36,876 nt of DNA from Bugula neritina (Eukaryota; Animalia; Bryozoa). Numbering within the stretch: position 1 is the stretch's first letter; every line of letters begins with the position of its first letter. Below are positions 231-36,722 of the stretch, one piece after another. The notes under the pieces are model-generated. The model saw nothing but the letters and a program-made list of their open reading frames with translations. It had not been told where the DNA came from and ran no database searches. The stretch is from NCBI GenBank assembly GCA_964035545.1, contig CAXIUT010000286.1:1-36876 (forward strand). Direction: 5' to 3'. Both the position numbers and the translations under genes were made by a program.

Positions 231-1730
231 TCAGAAATGAATTGGTTTGCTGTGGCAGGCCATGCATGCTTCCTTGAAGGCTTATGAAAGGGTGGGATGG
301 GCGTGGCAGGCTCGGGCCAAATCTTATGAACTGGCTCCATACTAAATACCAATAACTGCTTCAGAGATCATCTATCCTGCACCTGGACCCATGATATGGG
401 CTCCTAGTAGTCGATCTGTCTTCTTTTATGCAAGAATTTTGACCATTCCATCAGTATTAGAGATGGCTTTTGCTCTTGAATTGGCCAAGAATGGGAAAGA
501 TCCTTTATTGTATTCGATATCTTGGTTAAAGTTGGTTTACTTTTTGCTTTGAGTTATTATTCTGTGTATCCGACGCTGGCTACTTCTGGATAAGTGTAAA
601 TAACTCCAGGAATGGCATTGTAGTTAATATGTGGATGCTTTCCTGAGATTTTTTATGCTGCAAAGATACCTTAATCTTAGGCTTTATGGGCAAGCATAGG
701 ACCTCTAACGACATCACCGATTCCCATGATATTGGTAACATTTGTTTATAATTAATCGTTGACAATGACTCTTCCTTTATCGTCCATTTTGACTCCAGCT
801 TTTTCTAATCCAAGAGATTATGTGAAAGGTTTTCTTCCTGTAGCTACTAAGACATGATCAGCTTTAAGTACTTGTTCAGGTCCTCCTTTGACAGGTTGGA
901 TGGTAACTTAAGCATATGTTCCATGATTTTTACCACTAAGAACTTTATGTGAGGTCATGATTTTGATTCCTTGTTTAGTTAGGACTTTATTGAATGATTT
1001 TGCTAATTACTTATCAAGTGATGGAACGATTTAATCAAGATATTCGACTACAATGACATTAGTACCAAATCTTTGATAAACTGAAGCCATCTCAAGACCA
1101 ATGACTCCTCCTCCAATTACGATCAAATCTTTTGGAACTTTTGGTAGTTAGAGAGCACCTGTAGAGCTGACTATTATTTTTTAATCGAATGGCAAACCTG
1201 GAAAGCTAGTTGCATCACTGCCAGTAGCAATAATGGTTTTATTGGCTGTGATTGTTTCTTTAGATCCATCTAATCCATCTACTTGACTATATTTGATAAG
1301 ATTTACATGGTTTTTGCATCAACAAAGGATCCGTTTCCTTTCATATAAGTAACTTTATTTTTTTTGAATAGTCCTTCTACTCCTCTTGTAAGAGATAGTA
1401 CTACACCGCTTTTATTCTATTGTGTTTTTTTCCAATCAAGACTCATACTATTGACGTTGATCCCAAAAGATTTGAATTCGTGGCTGGCTTCGTGATATTT
1501 ATGTGAGATATTTAAGAGTGCTTTAGAGGGGATGCAGCCCACATTGAGACAGGTTCCTCCGAGAGCACCTCTTTTCTAGATGCAGACTGTGTTGATTCCG
1601 AGTTGTGCGGCTTTGATGGCAGCAACGTAGCCTATCTAGATGGATGGATACCTCCGGGTCCGCCTCCGATGACTGCCAAGTCATAAGATTTACTGAATTG
1701 GTGTTGAATTCTGTTGAAGAGTTTCATCAT
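231..1730 (-). CDS. DLD: Mitochondrial dihydrolipoamide dehydrogenase (E3); three 20-nt introns (521-540, 1287-1306, 1632-1651)
   Basis: Code-30 translation: [72 protein letters not shown]; ends TGA TGA. Confidence 0.96.
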
Positions 1731-1757
1731 AGATATTAAATGATATAAATGATATGA

Positions 1758-3794
1758 TCAATTGATAGGTTTGGTATGTGTGAGGTAGAATTCAAATCGC
1801 ACTATGAGCATTCTTATGAAACTGTCATCTTATAGTAAACTTATATGGGCTCTTCTTTGAGTTATTTTGTCCATTAGAGATTCTTTTAGGTCCATCTTCA
1901 CGCTGCATCTTACTATTTTACCCACTTGCTTGTTAAAATTTTAGTTTAGTTCGAGTATTTGTTCGTTTTATCCTTGGTAGTTGCATAGAGAGGAGTATAT
2001 AGGAACGTATTCGTCTTGATGGTTGCCGACTAATATGATATACTTGAAGTGCTGTCGGAGATTACATCTAGACAATTCTAATAAATAAGATTTATCTTAG
2101 CTATTTAACTATTTTATAGATTATGCTTTAGATACCTTTTACATGCAGAACATGCCCATTCTAACCAAGCAACTTTCGATTTCATGGGTGCCGAGATGAG
2201 GAGATCCAAGAGTAAGTAGCAAATTCAATTTATAGTGATAGGGTTCGATATGTTTGAGCATTGCTCTAGCGATGACGCCACCCAGTGAGAAGGCAATAAT
2301 GTTTACATGTTGGATCATTGTGTGTGACATGAGGTAGGAACTGAGTTATAGACCTGCTGTTTATCCTAAACTGCTGATACTTTAGTTGGTTCCTTTTGTT
2401 ATACTTTTAATCGAATAAAAATTATTGAATCCTAGGTACATATTGAGGTAGCTTTTTATTTTAGAGAGATCGAATTCGTTGCCTTCGAATCCATGGATTA
2501 AGATATTGACTGTTTTGTATAGATCTACAGGTTATCCTTCTAGTAACTCCTCGGAGACGATCATGAGAGGTTGTTGGCTTTCCAGTTGACAGTGATTGCC
2601 CATATTTCCTAGCAAATGATTGATTTTTTATTTATAATCCCAAAATTCTTATTATTCGATTTGATTATCAATGATAAAATTTTGACTATACTTGCCGATA
2701 CCGATATACTCCTCTACTCGTCTTTTCTAATGCAAAGAAATATCTTTGCCAATCCTTTCAGAATAGCTCGATATTATTTGAATGCATCTGACGAACAGGG
2801 CTCTGGTATTGATTTATATCATGCTTGATTATTAGCGGATGCATGCTGGGAGATGCTAAATTGTGCAGTCGTAGTGCTAGCATAGTTGCATTATAGATGA
2901 TTTTGATTGTTTTTTTAGTGGGATTGATGATTATATGCTATCGTTTATTTATGAGATGATTTTTATGTGGGACAAGTTGTGGATTTATGATTTTATCCAT
3001 TTTTGTTAGAAATTTTTGTTGTTTATTTTTTTTGATCTTTATTTATATAATTTTATTTTTTATTTCAATATTCTACTCATTCTTGCATAGCATCTCAATT
3101 TATCTTCGATTAGTATATGATACAAATTTCTAATAAAAACATCTCGACTTTATTTCTCTTGATTCCACAAACAACACTAAACTTTCTTCTCAACAAAATC
3201 ATATCCATCATATACATACTATTTCTCTACATTTTTGCCAATTCTATGCGCCATGATGGCAACATCGACAAATGAGATATACTAACATTTGCTGAAGATA
3301 AGTTTACGATAGTTGTATTATTTCAATTATATATTTTAGTTCAATTAGAATGTGAGATGTTCTTTTGCTACTTTTTATTCTTGGGTGTTTGTTGGTTCTT
3401 GTGGTTAGAAGGGGTGGGGGATGCCGTTGATTTTGTGGAGTTAGAAGTTGATGATGATATTTGGGTGGGTTGTTGTTGTTTGGATTATGAGGCCGGTGGT
3501 GAAGTAGATTTATTGGTCATTGAAGTTTATTTGGAATCTATCTGTATCATAGATATTGTACCTCTCTGAGATTAGCTTGTTGTTTTGGAGTTGGCTGCCT
3601 ATGCCGTAGGTGTTGCCGTTGTTTCGATCGATTGAGCGAGGTTTGTTCATGAGTTATGGTTTTATGATGCCCATTTTTATGTTTTTGGTTTGGTTGGGGG
3701 ATATTTTTATGATGTAATTTGAACTGTGGTGGAAACTTATTGATTGGAAATGAAGCGGGAGGATGTAGAGTTGATAGATTGAGGTTGTTTACAT
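1758..3794 (-). CDS. FAM135-like protein with C-terminal DUF676-type putative serine esterase domain, 678 aa, intronless
   Basis: Continuous 2037-nt frame with no TGA; motifs ILIHGFEGNEFDL, IAFSLGGVIARA, LTLGSPHLG, VGNHQDEYVP. Confidence 0.8.
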
Positions 3795-34850: not shown

Positions 34851-34876
34851 ATGAATATTATAGAATATAAGTTCTA

Positions 34877-36722
34877 ATGAAAACAGTCACTCATCTGACT
34901 TCTGTTTTTAATATTCCTGAGTGCGAGGACTAGTAGTTGGATTTCAGGAAGATGTACGAGAAGTAGAAGAAGATGCGTGTGTTCTACTAGCGGAAGACTC
35001 GTGAATTGTAGACGAAGGTGCGAGGTTTGATGCGGGACAAAAACATAATAAATGCTCGTTATAAGCAGCATGAGGTGCAGGAGATGATGGATGACATTCG
35101 TTCTTTTAAGAGTATGTTGCCCAATTCTGTAAAGCAGATTGATTATGTGGACAGTGAGGGATCTATTGATGAGAATGTGCCGCCTCCTTTGATTAAATAA
35201 TGGGCTATTTATGGGCTCAGTTAGTAGGAAATTTCAGAATGTGTTGAAAATTAACGATATCCTGCTGGAACTATCAGTAGCAACTACAAACCATCACAGA
35301 TAGTGTAGCATAGTTCCAAGTTGGTTTTCCCATCTGGAACAGGAATCAAGCATTATAGTTCTAAAGCTGCTCTTTAGTGCAGTTTGGACATCATGAACTT
35401 GTCTAAATAGAAGTTAAAGAGTTTTATCTTAATTTTCTAGCCGACTTCTTTTGGTAAAAAACGAGTTAAAGACTCATCGAAAGGCATGTAGATAGTAAAT
35501 TTGTTGAATTCTGAGCGAAGGGTCTATGCCGTGTGCATTTAGTTGGACTAGTTTACAATAATGAGTGAAGGACCTCAGATGATCGAGATGAAAACTGCTA
35601 GAAAATCATTATAGAAATCAGTTAAAATCAATTAAAATCACTAGAATAAATAATAATCAGAATTATCAATCATAGTTTCTAAGAGGATATATGGGATATT
35701 TTCATATTACCCATTTTTTGGATTTTTCTAATAGTTGCTTAAAAGTTTATTATACGGGGTAAAAGTCTAGCGCTATATTCGATATAAATAAGGAGGATAG
35801 AATTTGAGTCTGGTTGATAGTCGTGCTCACAGCATCATGATGAAAAATGCACTATAGTAGTTGCGTAAGGAAACTATTGGTAAAAATATTGTGTTAGATA
35901 AATTGATTGATTTTTCTGTTTGTGGAAGTAATAAGGCTTACCTGCAGTTGAGTAAGTAGTCATTGACTTTTTGTATGGCTTAGGAGTGGGCGTATTATGT
36001 GTTGTCTTTGTTTACTTTGGATATCTTTTTGGATTTGTTGACTTTGATGGTGCTTGAGGAGAAGATGGTTTTTGTGTGTACTAATCCTGCCATACTGACT
36101 CATGCCATATTTTTGTTTACTAATGTGTTGATTCGACCGTTCTAGTATCCATATCCGGTGGTTCCTTTGATTCCTGACCAAGAATAATATCTAAATGCTC
36201 CGTTTCCTGTTGTTATGGGTATTTGAAGAGTAAATAGGAGGTATTGGCTGCTAAATTGCCAAAGAAGTACAAGAACGTGTATGTATTTTTCTAGCCGAAA
36301 GGAGTATAGATATTTTCCTAGGAAGACAAGAGGAAGCAATTGGGTAAGAAATCACCAAAACTACGTGACAAATTGATCCCGAAATTCAAGAAGATGCGTA
36401 AAAACTATCCATCAAGTTTTTTTAATTTCATGCAAAAGAAAACAGAATAATTCTAGTATCCAGTCAACATCTAGCTATCAAGGGAGATCATTAGTTGCGT
36501 ATTTGAGTATATTCAGGCGGATATTTATCATAAGTTGCGAATGAGGAGACGATATAGAGGATTAAGAATCAGTTGTTGAGTATTCAAGATATTTAGGAGG
36601 AAGATATCAATCATGAGATATTTGTGAAGATTAAGGAGGAGTATAGTTGGAGAAGTAAGGATCCTTTCTATATTGCGTTTTTGGAGACGCAGATGCTTAA
36701 TTTACATATCTTCAAGTATTGA
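34877..36722 (+). CDS. DENN-domain protein (putative Rab GEF); one-base deletions near 36223 and 36538
   Basis: LVFPSG, RVYAVCI, IFSYYPFFGFFEELL, LMVLEEKMVFV, IRPFEYPYPVVPLIP..YLNAPFPVVMG, dDENN-like FLETQML. Confidence 0.85.

Follow-up and report, generated by a model that had tools for sequence, protein, structure and literature searches.

The base that follows a stop codon (position +4) is non-random at the true stops of systems with tetranucleotide stop signals, and elsewhere it has been tied to termination efficiency (cited in PMC5062323, PMC5829715, PMC4748822). In yeast, readthrough falls in the order UGA-C > A > G > U and no near-cognate tRNA favours UGA-U (PMC4748822); in bacteria a U at +4 forms the strongest termination context (PMC5289835). 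Among the ciliates, Tetrahymena, Paramecium and Oligohymenophorea sp. PL0344 have UGA as their sole stop, possess tandem UGA stops and disfavour C at +4, especially in highly expressed genes (PMC10553269), and in Condylostoma magnum T is enriched over A after terminating TAG and TGA (PMC5062323). The peritrich nuclear code (NCBI table 30) reads UAA and UAG as Glu and UGA as stop (PMC5062323, PMC4967479), and the descriptions of it consulted here are silent on the +4 base. Here we analyse the gene ends of a ciliate contig of 36,876 nucleotides (nt) (CAXIUT010000286.1; the whole of it is called the window), found in an assembly of the bryozoan Bugula neritina (GCA_964035545.1), and show that TGA, the only stop codon of this ciliate, is followed by T at all 13 independent gene ends that could be placed securely in the window, and by T at 81% of gene ends in a clade of relatives.

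This preference resembles that of bacteria in the base itself, and the bacterial bias is stronger in highly expressed genes and linked to near-cognate tRNA competition; however, the bacterial preference concerns mainly UAA and the factors RF1/RF2 (PMC5289835), whereas the present one concerns UGA in a eukaryote, where eRF1 acts, and greatly exceeds it in strength. That the +4 base tunes termination is known, and the genomic biases of eukaryotes in general are modest and favour purines; here, in contrast, a whole single-stop clade carries a pyrimidine, U at 81–91%, whose conservation is close to that of a coding base. For the UGA-only oligohymenophoreans named above C avoidance alone has been described, and no near-fixed U (PMC10553269). 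With Condylostoma magnum our ciliate shares an excess of T over A after stops at termination sites and not at internal ones, but in that species the code is ambiguous, all three stops also serve as sense codons, proximity to the poly(A) tail decides between the two and the T excess is modest (PMC5062323). In open-access texts on peritrich codes, ciliate tandem stops and stop contexts we found no report of a +4 U rule, only of C avoidance in other UGA-only ciliates. The clade, together with a sister lineage that uses C or U, may therefore offer a natural system in which to study what stop reassignment does to the release factor, to the decoding pocket of the ribosome and to near-cognate tRNA competition; when peritrich genomes or metagenome bins are annotated, gene callers could place gene ends by TGAT combined with 20-nt introns.

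Within a 216-Mb assembly made for another organism the window forms contig C295. The assembly comprises nine large chromosomes (C1–C9) with multi-exon, standard-code genes and many small contigs whose genes are rich in in-frame TAA and TAG; the contig itself is ciliate. No long open reading frames (ORFs) appear in the window unless TGA is taken as the sole stop, and TGA stands after all orthologue-verified C-termini. In orthologue alignments in-frame TAA pairs with Glu 160 times and in-frame TAG 191 times, the next most frequent residue being Asp (13 and 24 times, respectively). The code is thus of the peritrich type (table 30), with UAA and UAG read as Glu and UGA as the only stop. Introns are tiny, nearly all of 20 nt and of the form GTA...AG, and their narrow length range matches that described for three peritrich genomes (PMC13685798).

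A preliminary description of this DNA, made from its letters alone, had proposed that T follows the TGA of every gene that can be delimited. All 22 coordinates that it quoted do carry TGA (TCA on the minus strand) followed by the base that it gave. We took as secure those ends whose C-terminal peptide is conserved with orthologues or homologues, and this yields 13 independent ends, every one of them TGAT: 231, 4044, 7792, 18185 (with its paralogue 11745), 24949, 26352, 26367, 27179, 28437, 30285, 30429, 32495 and 32620. T makes up 35% of the bases of the window and 43% of the bases after any TGA within it; even against the latter, the most generous background, 13/13 has p = 1.6e-5, and the earlier view that chance is a very unlikely origin stands. 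The list itself required revision. The stops at 11745 and 18185 (both TGATCTCATA) count once because they belong to paralogues; that at 30310 results from the loss of one base in the assembly (frameshift at 30266), the real stop lying at 30285; and the tentative stop at 4010 is replaced by 4044, both replacements being TGAT. Of the alternatives 26367 and 26423, the former is the right choice, and the stops at 1758, 9886, 24975 and 36720 come from ab initio models only. The stops examined individually, each given with its following base, are these:

230..233, minus strand: dihydrolipoyl dehydrogenase, TGA+T; C-terminus ...KPIHF, model score 59–63, second in-frame TGA directly after the first (TGATGA)
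1757..1760, minus strand: 710-codon ORF, TGA+T; ab initio only
4043..4046, minus strand: gene with orthologues ending ...DILYQDDE, TGA+T; replaces the tentative 4010
7792..7795, plus strand: NDUFS1 (complex I 75-kDa subunit; Pfam PF00384), TGA+T; orthologues end ...FQKIRQEF, 7/7 TGAT
11510..11513, plus strand: dual-specificity phosphatase (DUSP), TGA+G; likely a genuine exception, orthologues T2 G1 A2 C1
11744..11747, minus strand: Cys-rich surface-protein paralogue A, TGA+T; reached via a 20-nt intron, 11894–11913
18184..18187, minus strand: Cys-rich surface-protein paralogue B (1388 amino acids), TGA+T; reached via a 20-nt intron, 18331–18350
24949..24952, plus strand: alpha/beta-hydrolase (ABHD11-like), TGA+T; conserved tail ...HHxWRFNxxYxK, TGAT in 27/28 distinct lineages
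26352..26355, plus strand: SHIPPO-repeat-like gene, TGA+T; orthologues of three relatives have G, G and A
26366..26369, minus strand: gene with orthologues ending ...DFREIFGG, TGA+T; settles the choice between 26367 and 26423
27178..27181, minus strand: PP1-type Ser/Thr phosphatase, TGA+T; 303 amino acids after patching of three deletions, ends ...KNVLPYFL as do its orthologues, 8/8 TGAT
28436..28439, minus strand: proteasome subunit, TGA+T; ends ...EKLWQ as do its orthologues, 7/7 TGAT
30285..30288, plus strand: TPR protein, TGA+T (corrected); 30310 lies beyond the assembly frameshift at 30266
30428..30431, minus strand: ribosomal protein S21e (RPS21e), TGA+T; 7/7 orthologues TGAT
32495..32498, plus strand: importin-alpha, TGA+T; ends ...EIQDPLEL, 5/5 orthologues TGAT
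32619..32622, minus strand: Lys/Glu-rich protein, TGA+T; has orthologues

The preference extends well beyond the window. With a stop-free piece of the hydrolase gene as query we obtained 55 homologues (43–84% identity, mostly 50–70%), a metagenome scan added 68 further loci, and a second, unrelated neighbourhood was taken from a choline-transporter-like gene. The homologue contigs are syntenic with the window over NDUFS1, DUSP, the hydrolase, the phosphatase, the proteasome subunit, the TPR protein, RPS21e and importin-alpha. Because the first TGA is often located within or after a 20-nt intron, plain ORF ends mislead, and genes were called with an intron-aware finder (three-periodic Markov model, introns of 17–30 nt) that is blind to the base after the stop; in the distant AT-rich lineages (L091–L105 and L122–L128) the gene models were too poor and only the ABHD gene was used. 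At 141 distinct gene ends from the clade with 20-nt introns the +4 base is T in 114, A in 14, G in 10 and C in 3 (81% T), and T predominates in 36 of 44 orthogroups (p = 1.5e-7). Uniform in the clade, in addition to the genes given as such above, are:

hydrolase: TGAT 15/15
succinyl-CoA ligase alpha: TGAT 12/12
alpha-tubulin: TGAT 3/3

The bias reaches the other ciliate contigs of the same genome as well as a wide clade of relatives, and it is equally strong at 50% G+C, where T makes up 25% of bases (13/14 in relative L051). In all the uniformly TGAT genes (the three above together with the PP1-type phosphatase, NDUFS1, the proteasome subunit, RPS21e and importin-alpha) +5 and +6 vary freely; the preliminary description's TGATC, said to be the commonest form, has no generality, +5 being unbiased in relatives.

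Against the controls the excess is clear: the 81–85% T at +4 of true stops compares with 26–28% after out-of-frame TGA in coding sequence, 29% after antisense TGA, 36% after intergenic TGA and 37% in the 3' untranslated region (3'UTR; composition over +5 to +34). The excess is limited to +4. Among orthologues of 13 orthogroups, mean pairwise identity falls from 1.0 in the stop codon to 0.84 at +4 and then to about 0.3 over +5 to +21, while the first and second codon positions upstream lie at 0.6–0.84; judged from these identities, +4 is conserved in the manner of a coding position, under purifying selection, with neutral behaviour from +5 onward. The hydrolase stop must have moved several times, because the length of the C-terminal tail differs among lineages, and TGAT was regained at the shifted stops, 27/28 distinct lineages having it. 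One of the hydrolase contigs (L079) is intronless and transcript-like, which confirms the spliced reading frame. A tandem TGATGA as the cause of the T was considered and rejected, only 4/91 stops having such a tandem. As a separate and rare arrangement, an in-frame TGAT one codon on (TGA NNN TGA T) is seen at several non-T stops (L057:7539, L057:17823 and two L106 genes).

In view of these findings we suggest that UGA-U serves as the effective tetranucleotide stop of this ciliate and of the broad clade around it, its U held by purifying selection, likely as the least leaky UGA context, and we regard this as a reasonably probable reading. UGA is the leakiest stop codon. In this lineage it has no alternative, and U at +4 would be the context that best favours the release factor over decoding by near-cognate tRNA, as measured in yeast and Escherichia coli; because the leakiest codon is the sole stop and +4 U its tightest context, selection would drive stops towards UGA-U, presumably most strongly in well-expressed genes. 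About 80–90% of genes carry the U, which is kept while the rest of the 3'UTR drifts; UGA in any context is excluded from coding sequence, and UGA-A, UGA-G and UGA-C still end some conserved genes. Selection for the tightest tetranucleotide is likely the simplest account. In the relatives T at +4 falls from 91% through 80% to 69% over terciles of rising reassigned-codon density, a trend compatible with stronger selection on well-expressed genes; the density is an expression proxy only and confounded with gene-model quality.

The U at +4 is a quantitative preference and is not obligatory. Non-T endings occur in one or several species in DUSP, histone H2A (G1 A2 T2), a SHIPPO-repeat gene and a DNA polymerase, and H2A departs from the stronger bias supposed for highly expressed genes. 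The preliminary description had confined exceptions to uncertain ends; this probably does not hold for DUSP, whose TGAG looks a real exception because its orthologues vary too, although its C-terminal peptide in the window differs from theirs. Four further points weigh against the reading that we favour. In the second genomic neighbourhood only 7 of 14 ends have T, which makes the genome-wide figure uncertain. The gradient from 91 to 69% may stem partly from poorer models in weakly coding genes. The U bias of this clade is extreme beside other UGA-only ciliates, for which avoidance of C alone is reported (PMC10553269), a difference that the reading does not account for. Finally, a sister lineage (L067/L106) has C as often as T, with C or T at 14/16 ends. 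This lineage, a more distant one, has the same code, introns of 19–22 nt and a hydrolase 50% identical to that of the window, and in one orthologue the C is kept between its two species. C is the leakiest UGA context in mammals as in yeast, and since L067/L106 use it, least leakiness is not the whole story; the C/U lineage argues for an additional, putative lineage-specific component.

Among the alternatives, one would take the conserved U out of translation altogether and make it the first base of a 3'-end element (a cleavage/polyadenylation or binding site) that abuts the stop in compact genes. Intergenic spacers and 3'UTRs are indeed very short, and the tie of the U to termination is a prediction; nevertheless such an element would here consist of a single conserved position, followed by neutral identity from +5 to +21, and would have to travel with the stop, since the U tracks the stop wherever it has moved. 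Moreover, a tendency to T as the next base is shared by the first backup TGA in frame beyond the stop (17/31, p = 0.03). We consider a 3'-end element unlikely.

Comparably doubtful, in our view, is a release factor tuned so far that the eRF1 of the lineage recognises only UGAU, with UGA-A/G/C poorly terminated, used as sense (for example as Trp) or routinely read through. An eRF1 with a deletion in the GTS motif has been reported for Carchesium (PMC10089648), and the C/T switch in L067/L106 suggests a lineage-specific reader of +4; within the window, one in-frame TGA-G falls at a conserved Trp:

11000..11003, plus strand: in-frame TGA+G at a conserved Trp of the dual-specificity phosphatase; TGG in three relatives

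Compared with the orthologous TGG AGT TTC, however, the run of G is shorter at this site and that of T longer, so that the TGA probably represents two compensating homopolymer errors (GG>G and TTT>TTTT), an explanation available because errors of this kind are shown in the assembly (see below). Conserved coding sequence has almost no in-frame UGA, and the proposal of the preliminary description that UGA-A/G/C is usable as sense is therefore unsupported. In accurate contigs, searches with tblastn through stops found no in-frame TGA where orthologous coding sequence aligns well, the internal TGAs lying in poorly aligned introns and gaps. About 110 kinase domains (about 27,000 codons) from the genome's ciliate contigs contain some 1,100 in-frame TAA/TAG against 9 TGA, and these nine sit in 6 matches that are mostly lower-scoring or have interrupted frames; ORFs of 1,385 to 2,802 codons run without any TGA. 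In contrast to the ambiguous stop/sense codes of the Condylostoma, Parduczia and Blastocrithidia type, we thus see no translated internal UGA here. Conserved genes do end at UGA-A, UGA-G and UGA-C, without conserved extension beyond, and backup stops are not significantly enriched behind non-U stops (5/38 versus 13/124). A scan of the window and of 35 loci showed no suppressor tRNA and no tRNA with a UCA anticodon; the only tRNA genes there were for Ala and Lys (Lys in four loci). A motif scan for the eRF1 gene across all loci collected found none; that of the genome itself is located at G000:C314:17534-17926.

A stronger version, in which an eRF1 with a changed GTS loop would recognise the four-base UGAU as the stop proper while UGA-A/G/C, terminated very poorly, is partly decoded (as Trp at 11000, for instance), giving UGA a dual meaning that depends on +4, seems to us very unlikely. 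That the T is an artefact of T-rich composition, a small sample and a biased choice of gene ends (a suspicion fed by the T content of the window and by the misplaced and paralogous stops of the first list) was tested and rejected, and deserves next to no credence, as the rule holds in relatives of 50% G+C, at orthologue-verified C-termini and against five kinds of control TGA.

Returning to the accuracy of the window, its DNA was found in eleven public DNA runs from three studies. Contigs from four of these runs were compared with the window over 24700–30600 and show a single additional base at each of ten sites, and the window must therefore contain frame-breaking one-base deletions; eight of the ten extra bases are present in all four runs, and those at 26991 and 28559 are backed by three.

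25331, 25708, 26427, 26991, 27502, 27668, 27750, 28559, 30123, 30266: one-base deletion sites, nearly all in homopolymer runs

Once the ten bases are inserted, the models of the PP1-type phosphatase, the proteasome subunit and the TPR protein match their orthologues, the patched TPR protein ending ...SSKLGKRSIY. There are 15 further indels relative to the public contigs, not itemised here. The two introns of NDUFS1 (7282–7302 and 7385–7405, plus strand) measure 21 nt, against 20 nt in three relatives; the ORF stays open across both because their length is a multiple of three and they contain no TGA, and the extra base in each may be an assembly overcall.

Pfam matches in the window comprise NDUFS1, the alpha/beta hydrolase, TPR and armadillo repeats. 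L051, L057 and L065 share their gene order, down to the placement of introns, with the window at 4000–11500 and 23850–33700; the proteins of these syntenic ciliates are only 45–98% identical (typically 55–85%), with DNA similar enough to give tblastx matches in all frames. Between DUSP and the hydrolase the window carries, in tandem on the minus strand, the two paralogues for large Cys-rich (VSP/furin-like repeat) membrane proteins (11745–16145 and 18185–22473), an insertion absent from the syntenic blocks of relatives; the block in the window in turn lacks the succinyl-CoA ligase alpha gene that the relatives have. The ciliate looks like a passenger within the host assembly, whose ciliate contigs include one of more than 416 kb (C66) and which also holds bacterial-looking contigs (L034, L035 and L039; 43–50% G+C, long standard ORFs). 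The same ciliate DNA is present in public runs labelled as three different organisms.

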